Part shown: positions 1,459-19,400 of the stretch, piece after piece
Numbering within the stretch: position 1 is the first letter of the stretch
Layout of the letters: every line of letters begins with the position of its first letter
Source: Amphiscolops sp. MND2022
Taxonomy: Eukaryota
Assembly (NCBI GenBank): GCA_964187785.1
Contig: OZ076413.1
Span: 43,152,001 to 43,216,000, forward strand
Direction: 5' to 3'
Length of the DNA stretch: 64,000 nucleotides
The notes under the pieces: generated by a model
Database searches by the model: none
Seen by the model: the letters and a program-made list of their open reading frames with translations, nothing else
Told to the model about the DNA's origin: nothing
Translations under genes and position numbers: made by a program

Positions 1459-4400
1459 TGTATCATCCCCGTGAAGGAAGTGAATCGTCTAGCCCTAGCC
1501 CTCAGTATGTAAGGACCTCAGATGACGTCAGTGGTCACAGGACTACAACACCATCGACGACCCAGCAGCCGCCAACCGAGGACCAACCCACAGCTGTCAC
1601 CGTATACAGACAACCTCCGCCAGATGAAAACACCATGCATTTGGAGCCCCCAAGTCGATTTGGTGTGAGTTTGAAGAAACTTCTTTTCTCCGTTTCCGAG
1701 GGGTGAAACGCCCTTTCGAATACTCTCCCCATAACAAGCCATGGTACCTTATTTGCAGCCAAGTGATCAAGCAATGGTTATGGTTGGCTTGAAGATGTGG
1801 TTTCAAAGTAAATTGCTCAAGATTCATTCTGATTTTTGATGGCTATAAATATTCAACACAAAAATAAATCTGGAATAGGATAGCTAAACTTTCGAAGCTA
1901 TTGAATTTCACTGGATTTGTTGATAGTTAAAGATCAAAGTACAAGAGTGCACAACGCCAGTGGACAAAATTCCAGATCTAATTATTGACGAGTTGAACTA
2001 GTTTATCGACGTGAAAAAATTAGACATATTAACAAAAAAGAATGAAGCATTAAGGTAATAATGATTTTAATATTCTTTTGATAAAACTTGACTTTCCTCT
2101 ATCCGGGCGGTTAACTCCTTTCGGGTCTGCTTTGGCCGAAGCCAGTCACTGCTCAAAAGTTGCACATCGTTTGCTTCGTTACGTTTTTGCGCTTTGGAAG
2201 TTCACCATGCTGGTATTTGTCACAGCCGCCACAGGGCCGTGAAATAATAAGATCAGAGAGAACGCCAGAGGAAAGAAATGGAGAAATTAACCAAGAAGTA
2301 GCTAATAAAGCATCACAAACCTGAAAGAAAACAATCAACAAACAAACACTCATGGATATTGAACAACCCTGTAAGTGCATATTAATATCATCAACCCTCT
2401 GCAGTACCTGAAATACATAAATATGTAAATAATTAAATAATAAAAATTTGTTGTAAATGTGATTTGTTTGCAGTAGCTTGACCAATACGCTGATTGAAGT
2501 TATTCCAACCAGCGCACTGACCAGCCTACCGTCCCAATATCTGCGTAACAAAACACGCTAATTCTCACTGTCCTTTTAATTAACCAATCAGCGCTAAGCG
2601 CGAATGTGCAGTATTAACTCAGTACTATACTTGTCAAGCCACCAGTCAGCAAAGATTGGGACGCACGCCTGGTAGCTCGATCGAATTAATCAAAGTGCTA
2701 ATATACTAAGTGACGTCACGTGTGAAGTGAATACGAATCCAAAGCTTAGAAGAAGCTTAAATTGTGCAGTATTCAATAGCAAAGATCGAAAACGTAATAT
2801 TTATAGCATGAAAAGGTGTGATTGAAGATTTGTCGATCCCGATAATTGGGACGACCGCCGGGACGACCGTTTTAAATTTATAATCTGGGACGACCGCCGG
2901 GGCGACCGTTTTAAATTTATAATCTGGGACGACCGCTGGGACGCTCGCTCAGTCACTCCATCTGATCAATCAAGTACAAATAATCGATGCTAACTCTAGA
3001 TAAATGTTTTGCAGCTTAAAAGAAGCTAAATACCAAAAGAACTTCCAATGAGTAATAATCGATGATGCTTGTAGTATTTTTAACGTGTTCAGCCCACCTT
3101 GTATTTGAGTCAACTTCCCAGGCGGAGCGCTAAATTTCATTAAAAAACAAGAGCCTGGACAGCTGACCGAACGTATTTAATTAATACATGTCTTATAATT
3201 AACCGAATAACAATGTTGCCCCTGTTAAACGTGATATTTGACGATAATATAGTAAAACAACCCCCCAGTGCTACCTTTTCAGTCCTCACATGCAATGTTT
3301 TGTTAATACATAGTTGAGTCAATAGCCCGGTCAAACGGCCAGGCCACTCTAAATGAAATTCGTTACCTGGCGTTCACCCAGGACTTTATCGTTAGCCTCA
3401 ATTTAAAGTGCTAATTAACGGCCATAATCATCTGATTTAGAAGAAATCAGTGCTGTTAGTTCATTTCTTTGATGTTTCCCTTAAATTACTAGTAGTAAAA
3501 TTTGGGATTGTTCGATGATAATTTCATTTCCTTTTCCCGCTTCAGTAGCTAGGTTCATGAATTTCAGTGCCAACTTCACCTTCGGCGTCTTGAAAAGGCG
3601 GGGAATGAAGAAGAAAGGGACGCGGAATTGGGAAGCGGCAGGAAGTGAATTCCCACTTTTCTTTAAAGTGGGTTGAAACCGAATGCCGAGTCCCGAGGAA
3701 GAGTGCCTTATTTGGATTTCCCCGCTTCGGAAAGGACGCCGAGGTGAACAAGGTGTGAATTCACGCGCGGGGTTTTCTCTGCGTGTCTAGCGTAAAGTAT
3801 AAATACCTGAAGCGGGATTAGGAAAAGTTAGTTGACAATTTTATTTTTCAAGTGCGTTTGATTAATCGTTCTCCGGAAATTTTGCTTTTGTAATAATCGT
3901 GGTAATTACTTTTGCTTAATATAATTCCTTTGTTTCGGAAAACTTTGGCAAATTACTAAACTGAAGTCTCCATTACGTTTGTAACGACTCAAGTTTAGTT
4001 GGAATATTGTTTCTCCACTATTTTTACAAGATGCCTGAGAAATCTCAAAAACGAAAGTTGAGGAGTAACCAGTCGACTAGCCAGTTCGACGTAGAAACCG
4101 CAAGCTCTATTAACGACGAAAACACCGTACTTTCGGAAAGGGATTTTGAAGACATATCCAATAAAATTGAGAATAGAATTTCCAAACGTCTTAAAGACAC
4201 TGAACTCAACCAACGCGAGATATTAAAATTGATTGAGAACCTGTCGTCCAAAGTTGACAACCTATCAAGCGTCAATTCTGAACAAGGTTACTTGACGACC
4301 AGAGCTGAGAATAGTGGAAACCCTACTGATGAGCTAGAAGAAGTTAGTTTGCCTAGGAACGAGAGTTCCAACATGGTGACAGGAGTAATTAGCGAACCGA

Positions 4401-7400
4401 CCTCCAGCAACACCCACCCCCGATCTTCGAGCCTGCCGCCTCCAAACCAGAGGCACTCCGACGAAATCATCGACAAGCTGTTAGAATCCCTGTACGCAAC
4501 ACAACAACAGACAGCACAATTACCCCGTCTACCAAAAGCGCTTGCCACGACAATGCCAACATTCGACGGTAAAAACGAAAAGTTTGAACTCTTCGAAGAT
4601 TTGTTTCAAACAAGCTTGAAGGTCCATCCCCAAATAACGGAGCAAGAGAAAATACATTATTTCCACTCCCTACTGCGAGGAGACGCCTTGCAAACCTTTC
4701 GGAACATGACCGAAACAACCAAAACCATTCTGAACGACATCATCGCCGGATTCAGACGACGATATGTAAAACCCAGTCAATAGCCACTGCTAGGTGTAAG
4801 TGGGAAAACCTCACATTTGACCCGGCGAACCAAACATTCCAAGATTTCTTGGAGAACTACCAGAAACTTGCCCAAGAGGCATACGCCGACGATGCACCCC
4901 GCTTTATAGAAACCTCCTTCTACGCAAAAATGCCGATACATCTCAAAAGAGTGTTAAATCAAGCACGCCTTGAAACAGCATCATATGAAACGATGGTCCA
5001 GCACCTAGAGCGGGAGATGGAGCTCAACGGATTGGCAAATCCAGAATCCACTACATTTACCGGCATACACAATGTCGAACCCGCCAACACACCCAATCAG
5101 GGGAGGCACCCGAAAACTGCAAGCACGTGCTTTGGCTGCGGACATCAGGGCCACCTCCTCCGCAACTGCAGGAAGACAAACCGAGACAAACGGAACCAAA
5201 AACCCCCCAGCAATAACATCACCGACCCCTGCGAATCATGTGGCAAATTAAGCCACGAGACTAAAGACTGCTATTCTGGGGCGAACTGGGCAAACCGCCC
5301 TACATGGTGGAAAACGCCTAAATCAACAGGCGCCAACAGTATACCCCTACCACAACAAACTGCACCCTAAACTATACAACAACAATTCAGCAAATCAGCA
5401 GCCACAAACCGTGGCACAACCACAATACCAGCCAAAAAACTACTAAAGCCACGTCTTCGCTTCGGGGACTACACCGACTTCAGATACTACACCATCTCTG
5501 AACCCCCGAAGGACTTCGACAAGGAATTATTTATGGAATGCTCAGGTGAACCATCGATCGACTGGCAGCGATGATGGCTCATAAGACGCATCTTCAAGTT
5601 CAACAAAAACACCTTGGACAAACTCCTCTACCCAGACTGGTACACCCAAAACATCACCCAATACAACACAACACGCAGACCATTACTTCCCAGCTCCACA
5701 CCCGAAACTTACATCTACGACCCCGACTTCGAATGCGACCCCTACTACAACGACACTCTATATGACTCAACAAACCTTGTCTTCAGACAGTCAATCAACG
5801 TACCATTTCATGAATTCATAGCCAAAACCAACATGGACATCTCGACAACTCCAAAAAGGAAAGACGACCTCAATCATACTCCCGAACCACAGGCTGAAGA
5901 AGAATACGACACAGAAATCACCGTGATCGTAACACCTCCAACGACTTCCCTCAAGTCAATCCTCAAACACAACAATCAATCACCACTGGTTGACTTCCAG
6001 TCACCCACGAAACTCCCAGCCACCCCCAATGAAATCCGGGCAGCTATGACGTCGTCCCCCTCCAGTCCAGAGAGTCCTGAACATAAATACTCCACCCCTA
6101 AAACCCTGGTTGACGACACAAAAGCCGGGGACCAAACAATTGCAAGTCAACCCACAACACAACCGAGAACTCGCCGCGTCAAACGAACTCTGACCTGCGA
6201 ATTCAACCAGCAAACAGAAGCTAAAACAGCGACAAACAGCCCACTCATCACTACCCAAACCTCAAGAGAAGAGCCAACCAATCTAGAACAAGATGAAGAA
6301 TGGATTCAAAACAACAAACAATTGCATGAAATTGCAATTACAGACCCAGAAACAAGCGAAAAATGCATACCAATTTTTTCGGCCATCAATCTGAAAAAGA
6401 AAAGGAAAATGCTCTTCGCCCCGATGGATTTCAACAACATTTCAGTCGATGCGCTTGTTGACTCCGGAGCACTCGTCAACTGCTTACCAGAAAGCGAATT
6501 CCAGAAAATCAAAACAGTAAGCCCAGACAACATCCTCAAGGAAATGGATCCACCAACATTTAAATTGCAAGTCGCAAACGGCGAGATAGAAACCCCCACA
6601 AAAACAGTTCAACTACAATTTGAACTAGGCGACTGGACGTTCAAAGAGACGTTCATCGTAGCCACAAAGATGACAGGGCCCATCCTCGGACTAACCTTTC
6701 TCAAAAACAATAGCGCAATCCTCGACGTCAGTCAGGCCCTCTTACATTTCCCCCACCTGACCTAAGCAATTTCTGCAGACGATAACGAGACAATCTCAAG
6801 ACACCATAAAGTCACTACCAAAACCCAACTCACCATCATGCCCGACCATTGTGTAACAATTGAAGCTGGCATCAACCTACGTACCCTGACAAACACCACA
6901 GGAATCATCAACCCTACTGAACCATACTCCGGAGAACACCAACTGGTAGTAGCCAGCTCTCTATCAACAGTTACAAACTCCAAAATCGAAATCAGGGTTA
7001 CCAACACATCTCCAAACCCATTCACCCTCAAAAAGAACACAAATCTTGCAGAATTCACCATTCTATCCCCCCAGGAAGCCAAGCAACTCCACCCACTCAA
7101 CTCTGCAGCCCTAAAAGTATTAGCAGAAGACGATTCCGAACAGGCACTAGAATATGTAAACGAACTCCTCAAATCGTCTGAAAAGCCCCAGACTGTCCAA
7201 AATTTCTGGTTCCCCACACCGGACAACCCAGGAGACCCATCAACGCACACACCTATCCAGAGCAGGATACTGAGAGAAATAGAAGAACTGGAAAACATCC
7301 AGAAACTCAATCCTCATGACAGCCCTGAAGACAGAGCAACTTTCTTATCCAATTTCAAGTGGACGGATTCACAACTCAGTGATGAAGACAAAAAGGACAT

Positions 7401-10400
7401 AGAAGCAATCCTTGTAGAATACAACGATATCTTCGCAAGGCACCGCCTTGATATCGGAATTAACAACGAATTCAAAATAAAGCTCACCCCCAAATCCGAA
7501 CAGCCAGCGTACACTCAAAGCCTACCCTGCCCAGTCAACCTGAAAGACGACTTGACAGTCGAATTGGCGTTAATGCACTACTACGGCATAATCACCACGC
7601 TCCCTTTCAGCAAGTACGCAAGCCCAATAATTGCCCAAAGAAAACCAAACGGACGCCTACGATTGCTAGTTGACTTACGAAAGATCAACAACCTCATTTC
7701 CGACGATTATATAAACAATAATCACCATGTGAGCACCCTCTCGGATGCAGCTCAGCATTTAGCCGGAAAGAAACTGTTTTGCAAGCTTGACTGCTCTCAA
7801 GCCTACCACGTCCTGCAAATGGCAGACCAAAAATCAGTGGAACTCCTGGCGTTCAACTTTGCCAGTCGGACATTCGCCTACCTGCGACTCGCACAAGGGC
7901 TCAGCAGATCTCTCTCCTCCTTCTCGAGCTTTATGCGGGAGTATCTTGACCGAGTCATCAAAGCCGACAAGTGCGCCCAGTACGACGACGACATCGGGAT
8001 AGCTACCCATACTGCCGAGGAGCTGAAGAACAACCTGCGTGAGGTCTTTCAGTGCATAAGAGAAGCAGGTCTGCGTCTGACAATGGCTAAATGCCAGTTC
8101 GGTGCCAAGGAAGTCGAATTCCTTGGACGAACAGTCTCACCCGAAGGAATCGCCCCACAGAGTCACAAGATCAAGAACTACCTCCAAAAACTGTCGTTCC
8201 CAAAAACCAAAAAGGGCCTACAGAGGTATATTGGTTTCGTTAATTATTATCGGAACTACATACCTCGCCTCTCCGAAAAGATAGCACCCTTCCACGAATT
8301 AGTCAAGGCAGACAAACCAATCAAGATCACAAACGAGATCATCGGGACATTCGACAACATCAACAAGGCACTTGAAAACGCTTGTGGGCTATGGCTGAAA
8401 CAACCACTACCCAACAAACAGTACGTCCTCATGACAGACGCGAACTTCAAAAATGCAGGCTACGCCCTCATGATTGAAGAAAACGCTGATGAAAAACTGA
8501 CCTCAGTTAAAAAGACTTACGCCCCGGTAGCGTTTGGTTCCGAGACATTCTCTCCGTCCCAAATCAAAATGTCAATATATGCCAAAGAATTCTTGGCTAT
8601 ATATTTCGCCTTCATGGAATACAGCCACATATTGTGGGGATCGACCAAACCGGTCATCGTCCTAACAGATAACAAGTCCGTCACACGGTTTTTTCAAACC
8701 AAAATAATACCACCAGCCTTGTGGAACGCCTGCGATTTCGTCCTACAATTCAACTTTACGATCGCCCACGTCCCAGGGCGCATGAACACCGCAGCTGATT
8801 TTCTTTCCCGACTTGACCTAGACCCAAAGGAAAAAGTCCAACTCTTAATCCGAGACGACATTCAAACAACACCAATAGAGGTACACATTCAATCCTCCAA
8901 CGTCGCAGAAGAGGAACAGTTCTACTTCCTCCCCGACGATGACATTGAAACCGAAGAACAAATTTGGGAGAGGAAGCAAAGAGCCCGCAAGAAAATTCCA
9001 GGGAACGACACCCCACCAACGCCAGGAGAAGAAGCAAATAACGAAACAGTCCAAACAGAAGACACCACAGTCATATTTCAAACGGAAATAACAAGACACA
9101 ACAAAACCACCGAAGACCAAGAAAACACCCTCCCAACTGACATGCGACACCAACAGGACCAAGACAGTGTCCTCAGAAACTACAAACTACGCCTCCTCAA
9201 AGAACCATACGATGAACACCTGATGGCCACAGACCACAGAGCACTCCGTTACACAGCGCAAGAATCGAGAATCATACTCAAGGACGGACTGCTATACCGG
9301 CAGTACTTCGGAGAAACCGGAACAGTCAAACACCTGCAAGTACTACTCCCGGAGCAACTGGTCGACTCCTTCATCGAGGCACACCATGGAATGCACAACA
9401 AACACCCGGGAATAACGAAAGTAATACAACAATGCAGAGAAAAGTATTACTACCCAAGTCTCGCAGCAAGGATAGCCAAACATATCAACCAATGCATGAA
9501 ATGCATGCAAACAAAACGAACAGACAATCGCCTCCTAACCCCACCAATGATCGACACGTCCAAACTGGCAATGGGACCGGAAGATGCCCTACAAATGGAC
9601 ATCGTCCCCTTCGACGAGCCATCCAACGGATTCACAGCGATAGTCACCGCCATGGACGTCTTTTCCCGCTATCTATTTACCTATTGTGTCACCAAAATAG
9701 ATGCCCGCTCGATCGCAAGAGTACTGGTAGACATAATGACAAGACATGCTTACCTGCCCACAACGATCATAACTGACAAAGGAACTCAATTCATGTCCGA
9801 AGTAATGGCTGACACCACACGCGTTCTAGGCATCCAATTGAAACACGCAACTACAAAACATGCCCAAACAATTGGTATCCTAGAACGCTGTCATGCATCC
9901 TTAAAAGAAGCCCTGAAAATATCAACAGGAGAAAGGAGAACAATGTGGCACCAGTTCGTCCCAACCGCCACACTAAACTACAACACAACCTACCACTCAG
10001 CACTCGGGTGCGAACCCAGTAGAGTATTCCACGGCAGAATACCATACAACGTGCTTGACTTAAAGTTCGGTCTCAAACAGAACCAAACCCAAAACCCAAA
10101 AACAGACATAGGCGAAGAAGTCGTCCAGAAGACCCGGATGATACACCAATCAGTAACCAAACACCTCCTCCACTCCTACATACGGTACAAACAGTACTAC
10201 GATAAAAAAGCTTCTGCCCACCCCCTAGCAGCAAACGACTACTGCTACGCCTTACACCCCCAGGCAAACAACCAGGGATCGAAACTACCTTTTCGCGAGT
10301 ATTTATGGACAGGACCATTCGTAGTAGTTAAAACCCTTCCCAACAACAACTACCTAGTTCGTAAATTACAAACGAACAAGACCCAAATTCTACACAGGAT

Positions 10401-13400
10401 ACGACTGAAACCATGCCCCACGAAAAATCGCCTTCCCGATATACAAGTTCAAACCAAGGACTTTCAACCAGACGATGAAGTTGAAATCCTACATGATGAC
10501 CTATACGCCCTAGCGTGGCAATCAGGGTTTGAACACTTCGTGATGACCCATAACCACGATCCCAACAACGAATCGGCAATCAACCCGACCGATAGTCATG
10601 ACATCTTAGAAAATATTGCCCAGGATGACACCCACGATACCCTAACGGAACCCCAACCCGAACAACAGGAATCCCAACCAGAACCCAACCCAAACCCAGA
10701 GCCTAGTTCCCCCCGCAAAGGCAAATATAACCTTCGCAGCAACCCCCCTTCAAATTGGAAAAGAGACTATGCCTACTACAACCCAATGGTTGTTAGCTCA
10801 AATGAATAAACTTTCAATATGAATTCATGAAATGGTACACCTACTACTCACTCAACTGACCTAAAACTGACTCAAATCCCTACAACTCGTCTACGCACTC
10901 AAGGAAAAACAATACAAAGAGCCAAAAATATACTACAGACTCTCCATGCCCACTACGGACAAATATATCCATTCCCTTTTCTTTGGCTGCAATACTAACT
11001 ACAGTTGATTAAAAGACTTCAGCCCATTCAACAACATACATAATACAGAACAAAGTAGACAAAGTGCCAACAATAATAAAGACCAAACTATAAAGATACA
11101 CAGTTCAACGTTCCAACAAATTTTGAAATCATCATCGCCTCTTTCCTTTCTTCTTGTCCTTTGAAGCACTCGATGAAGCTCGACTCGAAGACAACATTTC
11201 TTTCCGTTCCTGGCGTCTTTGCTGCAAAACCCGGGTAACGTCACTTGACCGCACAGGACTACACATCAGCAGAGACTTATCGACAACATTAGCAGCTGAA
11301 GAAGGTTGCGTACTGGGAGAAACACCTTGAATACTACCAGCATCACGGGACACACTTGCCCCAGCATGTGGACTGACAGCAGCAGCATCGGCAGACGGCG
11401 CAACACTAGAACCACCAGTACCTGCAACAGCCATCTTTGACAGAGTGCCCAGACGATGACGCCAATCATCCATCTGTTCCAGGAAATACGCGTCGAAACG
11501 ATCACGCAAACTGCGGTACAACTCCTGGTGGCAATGCTGATATACCGATGTCCATGGAGAGAAACTAACGTCATCGAAGAAACTCTTTCCAGCAGAGAGA
11601 TTGACCTTTAAATCATCCAGACAGTCTTTTGTCAACAACTCCCCGGAACTGAATCCAGAGAAGGAAACGTAAGACTGCACAGACAGAATAGCTGAAGTAA
11701 GAATCTTTGCTGGAACAGCTACACCACTCAACGAGATATCCACATCAGGATATGACACCTCACGGGGCACCACCAGAACTGAGGACAACTGAACAACACG
11801 CGACAAATGGTCCCGACAACCGAAAGCCTCAGACTCCCGCATGAAGCTAAAAGTGTCTTTGATGGTGGACACCACTCGATGATTCCGTCGACGCAATTCC
11901 ACTAAGAAGGACTTGAATTCGTTACAGGACCCTTCGGCCCCTACATCAGTCAAACGTCCACACTCTAGGTAACAAGCAACCAGACCACGAAAGAGCTCAA
12001 CAGTATATGATTCCTCGCCAAGAAGCAACATATCCGGCGAAAAACAACTCAAACTGGAGGACAGGCGAGAATTCATGAAGGCAGACTCATTCAACACTCT
12101 CAAAAATCCCATGAGCAGCGAGTGACCCTCGCGAAGGAAAGAACGACGTAGTGCAGCAGTAGATCCAACCAATGCCTTCACCACAATTGGCTCTCCAACC
12201 GAACACTCCGCAAATGAGAGGTTTGACCAGGTAGTCAAGGGTTTGCCGACATACTCGCTCCAGGCATCAATTTCAGGAAGTTCAGACAGCTTCTTAACTT
12301 TGCCAAGAAGACTCCAATAAAAGAAGCAGAATTCACTATAATTTCGACAACTGTAGTCGGTAATTTCCATCACGAACTGTTTCTCAAAATTGGCCATGAA
12401 ACACAGAACCAGCACTTGAAGCACACACAGTCGGGACAAAATATGGTCATCGGCCAACACCATCTGACTCAGGTCCTGCGGAACTCTGCTCCGGGATGGC
12501 GAGACAACACCACCCTCCCCCAAGAACAATTTAATATCTCCCCAATGACTGACGATCTCATCGAGAACAACACTGAGAGAGGTGAAAGGGATATCTCGCT
12601 GTTGAATGCAACGACGCAAGGTTGCAAGTCCAAGCATCCAAGACTGATTTACAGCACGTTGTAAACGCAACAACAGATAGTCCAGAAGAGCGAAGCAGTC
12701 CAGAGCACTAGAACCATTTTTACCAGCTTCTTGAACATGCTCTTTGAATACTTTTGGGGTATTTTCAGAAATGAACATGGGCTTGGGGCGACACTGCTCG
12801 ACACACCATTCGGTCACCACATTGAAGAGAGTCGATGAAAACCCTCGCAGGCAAACAGGTGACTGCCCGGCTGGTAGAATTGCAAATATCCGCGTCAGAC
12901 CAATAATCTCAGAATCACAGAGACCCGGCGAGTTAGGTTCCCACAAAATGCAAACTTCACGCAGAGTACCACTAGCAAAACAGTGCACATTGAAACGCCA
13001 ACCATCACGATCCTCCCGCAGACTAACACTGGAAAAGGAATCCTTCACCCATCCTTGCACCCGGCGGAGAATCCGGGGATACAGAGTCTGTCCAATTATC
13101 ACCAACGTTTCAGTCTTGCTCCAGGTCGCCTGAGCGCAATTTGAATCCACTGGAAGTGCCGCCTGAAATTGACTCCACAACCGTCTCAGAAAACGATGAG
13201 AACCCCCACTCCGAAGCAATTCAAATAGGCCTCCAACCAGAGTTGAAGATGGCACGTTGGACACCACCCCAACTAACGCATCGACCTCATCTTCTATGAA
13301 AGGATTCTTCTTGCCCAAGACTACCACAGGAGTCTCCTCGATCTCTGCACGCAACTCAGCCGAAATAGACGACACAGGCACTTCATCGAATCGGGTAGTA

Positions 13401-16400
13401 TACAGTACATCTTCGTGGTCCAGACGATAACGCCGATCCTTTACGAAATGGCTCTTGCGGGTAAAGTGACGCCAAATCTCCGGCTCACCCCGACTGAGGA
13501 AAGACACGTCTCGGCGACACACAGCACAATTGAACCCATTGGGATTCCGGTCAGATCTGCGACTCACAAATAGCTGCGGCAATGGATGACTAGCCATTTC
13601 CTTCCGCAGCACATTCCGCTCCACTTGTCGCAGTTTCCTCCTCTCATACTTAGCAAAGAGCCGGCGTTTTGTCTCTTCTTCCACACTTATCTGGGACTGT
13701 CTGGACTGCATGTAAATCCCTTTTGACTTCAACAGGCGGACGATTTCAGTGAGACCTAAACAAACAAACAAACCAATACACCGAAGCATACACTGATAGA
13801 AGACAACCAGTAATGTGAGAACAGACCAGACGATAGATCAACCAACAAACACATAAATAAACTCAAACGCAACGAAAACTAACGTTTCGACAGACTACGA
13901 TCATCTTCCCGTTTCTGACTCCGTTCCAGTCGAACAGCAGCCTGCCCGAAAGCCAGCACTTGTGAGGAAGACAGGCACACCGCTCCAGCTGGGATATCCG
14001 AGAGACCCGCTAAAGAAACCAACCAGGATGAGACACAAGCCTACAGGGCATACGAAGAAGGACATGGAAATAAAGCAACGAAGTTCATAACGCCAATAAT
14101 AGTTACCTTTCTCCCATTCATTGTGGAGGACTGAACGCTCCAGACCTACACTAGGCCGAGCATGCTGGGTGCGCTCCCGAGATTTCCCAGAAGATGGCCC
14201 AGGTTCGAAAGCAACAGTGCCACCCACGCTGGCAGACGTCCCGCAAGTCACATCGCCAGAAGCTGGACCAGACTCATGGTGAGTACCCGCACCACGCACC
14301 AGCGAAGTATTACCTGGAAAACAATCAATACTCAACATCATCAGTCCTGATGTAACACGACCATGACAGAACGAATACCTACTGGATTTGGGCAACTGCA
14401 GAAACAGTGAGTCATCACTACCCTCGTCATCTGATGAATCCACAACAGACACCCGAGAGCGTTTCGTAGCCGCATCCGGAAGAACAGAATGCAATCGCTT
14501 GCTACGGCGCCCACCAGAACCACCGACAGAACTACCGGGTACAAAATCTGCATCACGAGGATCATCACTATCACCTGCACAAAACCCATATTCCATTAGA
14601 AGAATGACGCGTCTGTTTACTAGCATAAAACTGTTAGCTGGCCACTAACAAATAGCTAAAGGACTTACCCTGTCGGTCACAAAGATAATCCAGAGAATGT
14701 CTGTTGTCACTCTCGGTAGAATGATCCGAGTTGTCACAGTTTCCATCTCCTTCAACATCGCCTTCTTCACTATCACTCTCGTCAATCTGGCCGAAACCAG
14801 CCGCGGGCCGAACAGCAGAACCAGCAATCACAGGAGACTGTGCTACTTCCTCACGATCAACATCAGCTGACTCCTCTGCGATCACCAATTGACCCTCAGC
14901 AGCAGAACTGTCGTCACCCAATCCTTGCTCGTTCCCAGAAGTCAACTCACACTCCGTATTTTCTCCATCACCGCCCCGCGACTCGAACTCACTTTCCAAT
15001 ACTCCAATCTCCCGCGAACGCATAAAGCGCGCGGCAACCTCATCCGTCGACTCAGCCATTTTCAACTATCCAAAGCAATCTAAAAGATAACTACCAAGAT
15101 AAACCAACAGAAGACGTGGCGTAAAACCAATGAGATTATTATTATTCAATACTATTAGTATGACGTAATGGAAGTCATTCAGTCTGCCAGCTGAAAACTT
15201 TCCCATTCATGCAAGCGGCGTGAACAGAAGAAAAGAACGGAATTATCATTCAATTACTCGACCATTCCGCAGAACAGCCGCTCAGCATTACTTACAAGTA
15301 TTACTATTTATTGCATACAATTTATTCACTCATCGGATCAAATGAATTCATCAACACTCAATTCCTCAACCGATTATTTCATTTTGGACCGCGACCAAGA
15401 CGCTGCCCCAGTAAACCCCTGCGCACATTCAACACCTAAAGCGCTTGGTGATAATTGCGAAAATACCCAGTCACTCATCATTGAAGACATTTACGAGATT
15501 ATCAATACTGGGACAGAACATATTGTCCTTTATCATGAGTCGGCGCCGATATCTATCCTAGAAACAGCCCAATCAGACACATTACCATCCAGGAAATTTA
15601 CAAACTTCAACCCAATTATACCGGATGACGAATTCATGAGCCCTCCGAGAGACTACGAACACATGGATAATTGGCTATACAGGCCACACGATGGGTCAAT
15701 CAGCCCAATATCCAGCGACTCCAGTTCCATTGGTTACTTCTCAGGAAGCGACTGGGCAACCGATTCGTCCTGGATGTCTTATGATTCAATGGTACAATCT
15801 ATATTTCAACCCCCCATCTCTTCCCCATTCAGGCCAATTTCACCACTTCTTCCCACAACGGACGTCTCTCATCAAAGCCGGGGACTGTCACAGCCGCCAC
15901 AGGGCCGTGAAATAATAAGATCAGAGAGAACGCCAGAGGAAAGAAATGGAGAAATTAACCAAGAAGTAGCTAATAAAGCATCACAAACCTGAAAGAAAAC
16001 AATCAACAAACAAACACTCATGGATATTGAACAACCCTGTAAGTGCATATTAATATCATCAACCCTCTGCAGTACCTGAAATACATAAATATGTAAATAA
16101 TTAAATAATAATAATTTGTTGTAAATGTGATTTGTTTGCAGTAGCTTGACCAATACGCTGATTGAAGTTATTCCAACCAGCGCACTGACCAGCCTACCGT
16201 CCCAATATCTGCGTAACAAAACACGCTAATTCTCACTGTCCTTTTAATTAACCAATCAGCGCTAAGCGCGAAAGTGCAGTATTAACTCAGTTACTATACT
16301 TGTCAAGCCACCAGTCAGCAAAGACTGGGACGCACGCCTGGTAGCTCGATCGAATTAATCAAAGTGCTAATATACTAAGTGACGTCACGTGTGAAGTGAA

Positions 16401-19400
16401 TACGAATCCAAAGCTTAGAAGAAGCTTAAATTGTGCAGTATTCAATAGCAAAGATCGAAAACGTAATATTTATAGCATGAAAAGGTGTGATTGAAGATTT
16501 GTCGATCCCGATAATTGGGACGACCGCCGGGACGACCGTTTTAAATTTATAATCTGGGACGACCGCCGGGGCGACCGTTTTAAATTTATAATCTGGGACG
16601 ACCGCTGGGACGCTCGCTCAGTCACTCCATCTGATCAATCAAGTACAAATAATCGATGCTAACTCTAGATAAATGTTTTGCAGCTTAAAAGAAGCTAAAT
16701 ACCAAAAGAACTTCCAATGAGTAATAATCGATGATGCTTGTAGTATTTTTAACGTGTTCAGCCCACCTTGTATTTGAGTCAACTTCCCAGGCGGAGCGCT
16801 AAATTTCTTTAATAAAACAAGAGCCTGGACAGCTGACCGAACGTATTTAATTAATACATGTCTTATAATTAACCGAATAACAATGTTGCCCCTGTTAAAC
16901 GTGATAATTGACGATAATATAGTAAAACAACCCCCAGTGCTACCTTTTCAGTCCTCACATGCAATGTTTTGTTAATACATAGTTGAGTCAATAGCCCGGT
17001 CAAACGGCCAGGCCACTCTAAATGAAATTCGTTACCTGGCGTTCACCCAGGACTTTATCGTTAGCCTCAATTTAAAGTGCTAATTAACGGCCATAATCAT
17101 CTGATTTAGAAGAAATCAGTGCTGTTAGTTCATTTCTTTGATGTTTCCCTTAAATTACTAGTAGTAAAATTTGGGATTGTTCGATGATAATTTCATTTCC
17201 TTTTCCCGCTTCAGTAGCTAGGTTCATGAATTTCAGTGCCAACTTCACCTTCGGCGTCTTGAAAAGGCGGGGAATGAAGAAGAAAGGGACGCGGAATTGG
17301 GAAGCGGCAGGAAGTGAATTCCCACTTTTCTTTAAAGTGGGTTGAAACCGAATGCCGAGTCCCGAGGAAGAGTGCCTTATTTGGATTTCCCCGCTTCGGA
17401 AAGGACGCCGAGGTGAACAAGGTGTGAATTCACGCGCGGGGTTTTCTCTGCGTGTCTAGCGTAAAGTATAAATACCTGAAGCGGGATTAGGAAAAGTTAG
17501 TTGACAATTTTATTTTTCAAGTGCGTTTGATTAATCATTCTCCGGAAATTTTGCTTTTGTAATAATCGTGTTAATTACTTTTGCTTAATATAATTCCTTT
17601 GTTTCGGAAAACTTTGGCAAATTACTAAACTGAAGTCTCCATTACGTTTGTAACGACTCAAGTTTAGTTGGAATATTGTTTCTCCACTATTTTTACAAGA
17701 TGCCTGAGAAATCTCAAAAACGAAAGTTGAGGAGTGACCAGTCGACTAGCCAGTTCGACGTAGAAACCGCAAGCTCTATTAACGACGAAAACACCGTACT
17801 TTCGGAAAGGGATTTTGAAGACATATCCAATAAAATTGAGAATAGAATTTCCAAACGTCTTAAAGACACTGAACTCAACCAACGCGAGATATTAAAATTG
17901 ATTGAGAACCTGTCGTCCAAAGTTGACAACCTATCAAGCGTCAATTCTGAACAAGGTTACTTGACGACCAGAGCTGAGAATAGTGGAAACCCTACTGATG
18001 AGCTAGAAGAAAATAGTTTGCCTAGGAACGAGAGTTCCAACAGTATTGCTGGTATTTTGTCCCCGGTAGCATTTTGTCTCTCTTGTGCAGTGACTTTGAG
18101 TATTTCCTCCTCTAGTATTTTGTCCCCTTTTCCTGACATCGTACTTGATATCTCATTTTACTATATTTTGATGTCACATAAATTCATACAACCAGCTGCT
18201 AATTTATGTTAATTTCTCAATATTTTCAGAAACTTTTCCGCACAGGGGATAAGAAAAAAAGTTACTTGAACAATTTATACAATTTATATCCTTTGAACAT
18301 CGTTGACACAACTGCTGTTATTTTCAGGGATTTAGCAACGCTGAAGACACCGAATTTGCACTAGCCGTCTTTGCCGGTCTCAGCGATGACGATCGATTGG
18401 TCTTCATCGATTTGCTGGGCGATGAGTTGCATCGATATATGATATCAGTGGAGCCATCGCTCATCATCAGCTACCTCAGGGAGCATCCCAGGTTGGCCCG
18501 GAGAAAAACGGGGACGGGAACTGACAGTGACAGAATGCGGACTGAGATGATCGAGAGCCTCAATGCAGAGGGGGAACCAAATGATCCGACAATGGAAGAA
18601 AGCTTGAACGAGTTGGCACCGGATGAGATACAGGAAATACTGGAAATCATCGGTAGGAAGGGTGAACGTGTCATTATTAAAAAAAATAAAATATAAATAA
18701 AAAAGGTTATTATGAGATTCAATATTTATTTGCCTAAATTGCTGCGGTAGATTTGTGGGCAAAAAGATGAAAAATACTGAATTTTAGGATTGGGTGAAGG
18801 TTATCTTTTTGACATTTGCAATTTTTGACATGGAAAGTAAGGGGATCAAGTAAATGTGAGAATTTTTAACAATAATTTAAGCAAATAAAGTTTACTATAA
18901 GAATTCGGACTTTTTCCATAGCAAAATCATTTTGGTTACTTTAACATTCCAATTATGCATTGTTTCCCAAAATGAATTTCCGCTGTTTTAAAATTAATCC
19001 AGGCTAGAATCATCAAACATTAAGTAATATCAAAAATATATCTCATGTTTGTACAAGTTGTTTTAATAACTGTTGATAAGAAACCATAGCGCTTTTTGTA
19101 TTTGCAGGTTTCCGAGTGACTCACTCCATGGCGATCGATTACCTCACGACTCTTCCGCCCGACCAACTAACCGAAGTGCTGACCCTTTTGGGTCACTCGT
19201 GTCTCCATGGAGACGACATGGCAGATGAGTGGAGAATCCAGAACTTGATTGACAGGTTACGTAATCTTGACCCGGAGTTGTTGCTGCACATCCAGAACCA
19301 TCTGGGCATGAAGGTCACTGATTCCGATGTCAAAGGTCAGTTAATTCTTTTTTTTTCAGGTCACGTGACCTTGATTTAGTTTTATCATACGACATCTCAT

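Follow-up and report, generated by a model that had tools for sequence, protein, structure and literature searches.

Can a retrotransposon carry a complete, spliced protein-coding gene on the strand opposite to its own genome, and if so, what is the gene for? The question is raised by a stretch of 64,000 nucleotides (nt) from the genome of Amphiscolops sp. MND2022 (assembly GCA_964187785.1, contig OZ076413.1, positions 43,152,001 to 43,216,000), the whole of which we call the window. It holds a Ty3/Gypsy retrotransposon with long terminal repeats (LTRs), and between pol and the 3' LTR of this element lies a large gene on the minus strand, first noticed in a sequence-only reading of the same DNA. 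We think it probable that this is a genuine five-exon antisense protein-coding gene, a long-standing accessory of a Ty3/Gypsy clade that encodes a helper DNA-binding factor and is not a passenger. Its structure is conserved and its codons are under selection; its product has a recognizable predicted fold, and its coding block has been exchanged between lineages of the element.

The antisense gene and its conservation

The gene runs on the minus strand from an ATG at 15059 to a stop codon at 11132-11134, and is composed of the following parts, given in positions of the window:

14669-15059, minus strand: exon 1, 391 nt, from the ATG at 15059, encoding an acidic, serine-rich N-terminus; the start codon is kept in relatives.
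14575-14668, minus strand: intron 1, 94 nt, phase 1, GTAAGT..GTGCAG, with two invariant boxes.
14383-14574, minus strand: exon 2, 192 nt, of constant length in three aligned subfamilies.
14314-14382, minus strand: intron 2, 69 nt (70 in sister subfamilies), phase 1, GTAGGT..TCCAG.
14107-14313, minus strand: exon 3, 207 nt, of constant length in three aligned subfamilies.
14010-14106, minus strand: intron 3, 97 nt, phase 1, GTAACT..TTTAG; GT..AG in eight subfamilies, where it measures 94-99 nt or more.
13884-14009, minus strand: exon 4, 126 nt, exactly this length in every subfamily examined.
13756-13883, minus strand: intron 4, 128 nt, phase 1, GTTAGT..TTTAG; GT..AG in eight subfamilies and in two contigs from another species.
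11132-13755, minus strand: exon 5, 2,624 nt including the stop codon at 11132-11134, encoding a zinc-finger-like motif and a core with the hAT-transposase fold.

The sequence-only reading had joined the open reading frames (ORFs) of this region through three introns (14668-14575, 14106-14010 and 13883-13756), all in phase 1 and all preserving the frame, and this arithmetic is reproduced exactly. It had treated the 69-nt intron 2 as optional, giving a product of 1,202 amino acids (aa) with three introns or 1,179 aa with four, each with one terminal stop. Other copies of the family bear out the shorter product. Intron 2 is 70 nt long in the sister subfamilies, and its retention in their copies (L018-L026, L036) produces a frameshift and 54-61 stops in genes that are otherwise intact; with all four introns removed, the intact copies are open for ~1,180 codons. 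Because retention breaks the frame in this way, intron 2 is obligatory and not optional, and the conserved product is therefore a protein of 1,179 aa encoded by five exons. The 1,202-aa alternative falls, the in-frame length of 69 nt being an exception peculiar to the window's subfamily.

Eight subfamilies retain all four GT..AG pairs. Among 30 other genomic copies from three subfamilies, at 76-98% nt identity, the donors and acceptors are likewise kept, degenerate copies excepted. Across these aligned copies the exon lengths are constant (391, 192, 207, 126 and 2,624 nt) while the intron lengths vary (93-94, 69-70, 94-99 and 124-134 nt for introns 1 to 4); one copy has an intron 4 of 82 nt, left by a 52-nt deletion, and outside the three aligned subfamilies this intron measures ~130-180 nt. 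The same four introns, with canonical ends, recur in four further subfamilies whose proteins are 57-67% identical, and their exon 4 again measures exactly 126 nt, so that the small exon proposed from the sequence of the window alone has kept its length in every subfamily examined. Six of the seven aligned subfamilies share the start codon and the opening codons, M-A-E/D-S-T-D-E. For comparison, the longest ORF on the antisense strand of pol reaches at most 182 aa. We infer that the four introns are removed from a predicted antisense mRNA.

How widespread is the gene, and is it maintained? Searching the 1.07-Gb genome in six frames with exon 5 gave 13,606 first-look candidates, and the 51 matches that were scored cluster at ~97-98, 80-87, 66-67 and 58-59% protein identity, most of them open. 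Between subfamilies the ratio of nonsynonymous to synonymous substitution rates (dN/dS) is 0.10-0.12 for the whole antisense gene, well in line with the earlier expectation of a ratio below 1; it is 0.07-0.09 over the C-terminal 874 codons and 0.22-0.28 over the N-terminal 305. The assembly that was searched includes ~13 large contigs of 60-100 Mb.

The gene is also found outside this genome. Two metagenome contigs, L037 and L043, have at most 69% nt identity to the genome over ~500 nt and hence come from another species. Their antisense gene is 45% identical in protein to that of the window; its intron 4 sits at the homologous site, again in phase 1, and the acceptor of intron 2 is retained. 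A comparison of the two contigs gives a proportion of nonsynonymous differences (pN) of 0.25 and a proportion of synonymous differences (pS) of 0.77. Intron 3 is absent from both (L037, 616-885; L043, 149-442), leaving exons 3 and 4 contiguous; the presence of an intron thus differs between species within a gene borne by a retroelement. In more distant families of the window's own genome (L054, L055) the large exon is cut into additional pieces.

The position of the gene is equally stable. It lies directly downstream of pol and on the opposite strand in L031-L036, L038, L054 and L055 from this genome and in L043 from the other species, so that the earlier proposal that it belongs to the element and travels with it agrees with every related family examined. 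A separate later insertion, which the sequence-only reading had named among the findings that would overturn its interpretation, was sought, and around the gene we found no inverted repeats and no duplication of its own, beyond chance-level matches of 12-17 nt inside the coding sequence. The alignments show that structure, start codon and frame hold even where subfamilies share only 46% protein identity, and also in the other species; they likewise show strong purifying selection on the exons while the introns drift in length. Because of this conserved structure and the low dN/dS, chance ORFs, a passenger fragment and a purely RNA-level function can be excluded as sole explanations.

The predicted protein

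We modeled the protein encoded by exon 5 with AlphaFold2 together with 22 relatives (mean predicted local distance difference test score (pLDDT) 71.8, cores well predicted). Chains of the Hermes transposase took the twelve best ranks in a Foldseek search of the PDB (E 6e-5 to 5e-3, probability at least 0.99), and VIA-align superposed residues 133-703 of the model on residues 87-609 of Hermes with Z-scores of 12-13.2 over 380-432 residues, the next structural class reaching a Z of 6.3. All 30 of the 30 structural matches in Swiss-Prot are hAT-derived (ZNF862, FAM200A/B/C, ZBED5, GTF2IRD2, Ac, DAYSLEEPER), and language-model features likewise point to hAT-derived proteins. The model shows the C-terminal 870 aa as a predicted hAT-type RNase H-like core into which an all-helical domain is inserted, the C-terminal part completing it.

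Ahead of this core lies a zinc-finger-like motif, C-x2-C...H-x5-H, whose residues C76, C79, H96 and H102 are each present in 20-21 of the 21 members that cover the region; the motif falls in a predicted strand-strand-helix unit that is BED-like, with a local pLDDT of ~50. Acidic residues and serine are abundant in the N-terminal 305 aa, which also contain basic clusters; a further basic cluster closes the C-terminus.

The catalytic positions of the transposase do not seem to be held constant in the family. By rough offsets from the aligned ranges, the first catalytic Asp would correspond to ~residues 246-248 of the exon-5 protein, where 12 of the 23 members have Ser, 6 have Asp and 2 have Glu; 15 of the 23 have Gly after strand 4, and the helix at 682-696 lacks an invariant Glu. 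The hAT dimerization domain PF05699 was not detected in the antisense protein, though the genome's own hAT transposons match it down to 2e-20. A profile search of the PDB with the antisense protein found no match, and a profile search of 1.84 billion representatives returned 814 clusters, among which the 150 listed are fragments of the same family, with no bridge to named families. We read the antisense product as a transposase-derived DNA-binding protein, with a family function that would be independent of catalysis.

Ordinary hAT transposons are abundant in this genome, with 2,206 first-look candidates for PF05699.

The host element, cassette exchange and conserved boxes

The element that carries the gene is a Ty3/Gypsy LTR retrotransposon by its LTRs and target-site duplication (TSD), by the order of its pol domains, and by its candidate primer-binding site (PBS) and polypurine tract (PPT). 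Its landmarks in the window are:

2218-18042, plus strand: the Ty3/Gypsy element, 15.8 kb, delimited by paired LTRs and TSD and containing pol domains.
2213-2217, no strand assigned: left copy of the TSD, GTATT, read off the sequence and equal to 18043-18047.
18043-18047, no strand assigned: right copy of the TSD, GTATT, read off the sequence.
2218-4373, plus strand: 5' LTR, 2,156 nt, TG..CA, aligned by blastn with 15886-18042.
15886-18042, plus strand: 3' LTR, aligned by blastn with 2218-4373.
4374-4390, plus strand: putative PBS-like sequence TGGTGACAGG, directly 3' of the 5' LTR, read off the sequence.
15874-15885, plus strand: PPT-like sequence AAAGCCGGGGAC, abutting the 3' LTR, read off the sequence.
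4007-6765, plus strand: ORFs for gag (DUF1759/Ty3-capsid-like) and aspartic protease (Pfam PF03564, PF13975).
6838-10809, plus strand: pol ORF, 1,323 aa, with Pfam domains RVT_1, RT_RNaseH, Integrase_H2C2, rve and Integrase_p58_C in sequence order.

The two LTRs, 2.16 kb long and ending in TG..CA, are 99.4% identical over 2,158 columns (blastn), and GTATT stands on both sides of the element, which agrees with the earlier placement of the gene between pol and the PPT of an element with matching LTRs and TSD. The Pfam domains of the ORFs at 5614-6765 and 6838-10809 follow the Ty3/Gypsy order of protease, reverse transcriptase (RT), RNase H and integrase. In the window copy a TAA at 6763-6765, between the protease and RT ORFs, takes the place of the TAC or TAT of five relatives; the gag-pol frame of this copy is therefore interrupted, and its antisense gene is intact. 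More generally, the gag, protease and pol ORFs are spread over two frames with in-frame stops, and the gag ORF as mechanically called (4007-4783) starts inside the 5' LTR, whose end is at 4373. The plus strand of 4001-16000 has a GC skew of -0.19 to -0.25 and an AT skew of +0.20 to +0.30, a strong asymmetry that takes in the antisense-gene region and is not shared by the LTRs or the host flank.

Comparison of the window copy with its relatives shows that the antisense gene has had a history different from that of its backbone. Against L036, L033 and L034, the synonymous divergence (dS) is 0.05-0.08 in pol, and 1.5 or saturated in the antisense gene; against L035, the relation between the two is turned round. 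The identity profiles of L036 and L034 run at 97% or more up to ~10,750, at 46-87% from ~10,900 to 15,100, and at 91-99% from there toward the LTR, and thus place sharp borders at ~10,750-10,900 and ~15,100; in L033, identity drops earlier, at ~10,450, without full recovery. The exchanged block comprises the coding part of the antisense gene together with its 3' end, and its right border coincides with the conserved spacer described below. These profiles show that, among lineages whose pol, spacer and LTR are 97-99% identical, the coding block at ~10,850-15,100 has been exchanged by recombination. The presence of very divergent cassettes on near-identical backbones suggests a diversifying pressure on the module.

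Two further features accompany the antisense gene, a conserved spacer upstream of its start codon and, beyond it, an ORF on the sense strand:

15060-15341, no strand assigned: 282-bp spacer between the antisense gene and the sense ORF, a candidate internal bidirectional promoter.
15342-15992, plus strand: 216 aa, the second accessory ORF, which faces the antisense gene head-to-head and extends through the PPT into the U3 part of the LTR.

Blocks of the spacer at ~15110-15131, 15158-15198 and 15207-15225, with the cores TTCAGCTGGCAGACT, TTACGTCA and GTTTTACGCCAC, are conserved in seven subfamilies, including one in which the antisense protein is only 46% identical, and the spacer has the highest k-mer depth in the genomic sequencing runs. 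A conserved YTTTYAG just upstream of the antisense ATG may be an acceptor in the 5' untranslated region. In intron 1, identity between subfamilies is 91-96%, as against 69-80% in the flanking exons; the intron holds two boxes, at 14633-14648 and ~14598-14624, each present a single time in an element and without variation among eight subfamilies, one reading TTA(G/A)TGGCCAG(C/T)TAAC and the other a block that holds GACGCGTCA. We considered intron 1 as an RNA element and rejected this idea, as it has no Rfam match and no folding signal on either strand (z +1.0 and -0.6). We see candidate sites of binding or control in the boxes of intron 1 and of the spacer, and a candidate promoter in the spacer as a whole.

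The sense ORF itself is open in four subfamilies, with pN 0.22-0.29 against pS 0.65-0.74, and is 37% identical (E 1e-23) to a counterpart in a distant family (L038, 4225-4755, minus strand); Pfam has no match to its 216 aa. Its last conserved motif may be kept for cis reasons, because the PPT and the LTR end encode it. The head-to-head arrangement of this ORF and the antisense gene suggests an internal bidirectional promoter. Cassette exchange, the boxes of intron 1 and the spacer, and the sense ORF are all new beyond the earlier claims about this locus.

Helper, restrainer or passenger

How might such a gene work, and why would its introns survive? In the mechanism that we favor, the antisense gene would be transcribed leftwards from an internal promoter in the spacer at 15060-15341, and the same promoter may also drive the head-to-head sense ORF. 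Its introns would escape removal during retrotransposition, since it is the opposite strand, where they read CT..AC, that is packaged as genomic RNA; persistence of the introns through their antisense position is consistent with all of our observations. The protein would enter the nucleus by means of the basic clusters at both ends and bind specific DNA sequences there instead of working as a transposase, promoting propagation of the element by, for example, regulating its transcription, guiding its integration or countering host silencing. Host defense, or competition between elements, would supply the pressure for divergent cassettes. That the protein helps the element is suggested by purifying selection in lineages with thousands of copies, as it implies that copies with a working gene are those that leave descendants.

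The same protein might instead restrain the element: as a transposase-derived, DNA-binding repressor or exclusion factor encoded by the element, it would keep copy number down or shut out rival lineages, and the divergent cassettes would reflect competition among lineages. Very different cassettes on near-identical backbones fit a switching of specificity, a DNA-binding fold that seems to lack a conserved catalytic set would serve a repressor no less than a helper, and in the window copy it is the antisense gene that is intact despite the stop at the protease-RT junction. We nevertheless regard restraint as rather unlikely, since purifying selection in lineages with thousands of copies is more simply understood if the gene aids propagation. 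The hAT-transposase fold, together with the many true hAT transposons of this genome, raises another possibility, namely that a hAT DNA transposon was nested in the element or captured by it recently, or that the segment still encodes an active transposase by which the unit moves at the DNA level. Intron-bearing transposase genes are common, which makes a nested insertion plausible as the ultimate origin of the gene. As an account of its present state we disfavor a nested transposon, as no inverted repeats bracket the gene, and we hold this reading to be very improbable: the segment has neither terminal inverted repeats nor a separate duplication, the TSD of 5 bp and the TG..CA ends being those of the element, and the gene occupies one and the same place throughout the families of the clade, the other species included. 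It has no sequence similarity to a resident hAT element and no hAT Pfam domain, and the family seems to have other residues at catalytic positions (Ser at the approximate site of the first Asp in 12 of 23 members, Gly after strand 4 in 15 of 23). Its base composition has also come into equilibrium with the retroelement: on the plus strand, the region of the antisense gene has an excess of A and C equal to that of pol, unlike the LTR and host flank; this shared excess argues for a long residence in the retroelement.

Least probable of all, in our judgment, is that the ORFs are there by chance or as passengers, or that function lies in the antisense RNA itself, for instance as double-stranded RNA feeding small-RNA silencing, and not in a protein. 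Non-coding antisense transcripts of retroelements do exist, micropia being an example (as cited in PMC7264820). Here, a dN/dS of 0.07-0.28 in the frame of the gene, exon lengths that stay constant while introns drift, ORFs of no more than 182 aa on the antisense strand of pol, and a predicted structure that is a confident multi-domain fold all speak against it; codon-level selection refutes antisense RNA as the sole explanation, and an additional role of the RNA is possible.

Several results weigh against our preferred reading of a spliced gene for a hAT-derived helper. The four public sequencing runs look like genomic DNA: their contigs run through the introns without splicing, no joint falls at a predicted intron, and the joints that do occur are unrelated deletions; a search for runs labeled RNA-Seq listed none. 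At the three exon-exon junctions tested, with up to two mismatches allowed, the genome holds no intron-less copy, and within 640 nt after the minus-strand stop codon there is no AATAAA-type polyadenylation signal among five hexamer variants. The evidence for the hAT assignment is entirely predicted structure, with Foldseek template modeling (TM) scores of 0.23-0.52. Pfam gives no family for the antisense protein or for any of the 23 family members at E-values up to 10, zf-BED, bZIP and TRP28 included, and hhalign against one resident hAT transposase is null (probability 0.2%). As to the role of the protein, the results are compatible with helping as well as with restraining.

On a broader interpretation, the clade would have recruited a transposase-derived, intron-bearing regulatory gene together with a sense ORF and a bidirectional promoter, giving it a module like that of a complex retrovirus, with divergent alleles shuffled as the interface of an arms race with host silencing or rival elements. 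We offer this tentatively, as a possibility somewhat short of an even chance.

Is there any precedent for such an arrangement? The closest is in plants. Gypsy elements of the Tat/Retand type carry antisense ORFs between pol and the 3' LTR, in most copies and across distant species, and their function is unknown; ORF4 of Retand encodes TRP28 (Transposase_28), predicted to bind DNA, in 97% of clusters, and gene23 of maize Grande has its own promoter and encodes a nuclear protein (PMC7264820, PMC11963269). These plant ORFs, termed aORF-3R in Retand, Grande and rice RIRE2, resemble the present gene in being additional antisense ORFs, downstream of pol and ahead of the 3' LTR, that most copies carry, divergent families included. 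They differ in their host, a flowering plant, and in their TRP28 domain (PF04195), whereas here the host is an animal, as its Wnt genes indicate, and the protein has a predicted hAT fold and no TRP28. Four conserved introns, moreover, mark the present gene, introns being unmentioned in the main text of PMC7264820 and PMC11963269, as do the exchange of cassettes between lineages and the head-to-head sense accessory ORF. Loci matching Wnt are few in this genome, and the control prokaryotes have none.

Among retroviruses, HBZ of human T-cell leukemia virus type 1 (HTLV-1) and APH-2 of HTLV-2 are spliced antisense genes with nuclear products (as summarized in PMC11963269). Like them, the present gene encodes a protein from the minus strand, within the 3' part of a retroelement, its splicing being deduced here from conservation. 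HBZ is a small gene for a bZIP protein, with a single intron and a start in the 3' LTR; in contrast, the gene described here encodes 1,179 aa in five exons, with a predicted transposase fold and no bZIP match, and starts 826 bp inside the internal region.

Domesticated hAT proteins of animal hosts offer a parallel for the protein. ZBED5, FAM200A/B/C, GTF2IRD2, ZNF862, THAP0/P52rIPK and EPM2AIP1 are its best structural matches besides Hermes, and have a BED-type finger followed by a hAT core, which the zinc-finger-like motif and predicted core of the present protein resemble. Those, however, are single-copy host genes, whereas here thousands of retrotransposon-borne copies evolve with the element and have no detectable similarity to them at the sequence level. 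LTR elements of bdelloid rotifers have captured env-like, DEDDy and GDSL genes as a third ORF and shuffled them between retroelement types (PMC5408684), and they too are animal LTR elements with recruited and shared third ORFs. The main text of that study mentions no introns, transposases or genes on the opposite strand, its sole use of 'antisense' being for small-RNA reads. The sequence-only reading had known of no multi-intron gene of this size in an animal Gypsy element, and our search of the full-text literature, which was not exhaustive, agrees with it: it turned up no antisense, intron-bearing or hAT-like gene in an animal Gypsy element, and plant Gypsy elements and retroviruses were the sole carriers of additional antisense ORFs among its results.

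What is known of antisense accessory genes in LTR retrotransposons comes mainly from plants; the present case shows the same design in an animal, in an unusually readable form. A large protein with a recognizable DNA-transposase fold makes the accessory gene itself readable, its four introns would be a built-in record of expression from the opposite strand, and the occurrence of several very different alleles on almost identical backbones is a natural experiment on the role of an accessory gene. The locus also documents both the domestication by one class of mobile element of an enzyme from another and the modular recombination through which retrotransposons evolve.

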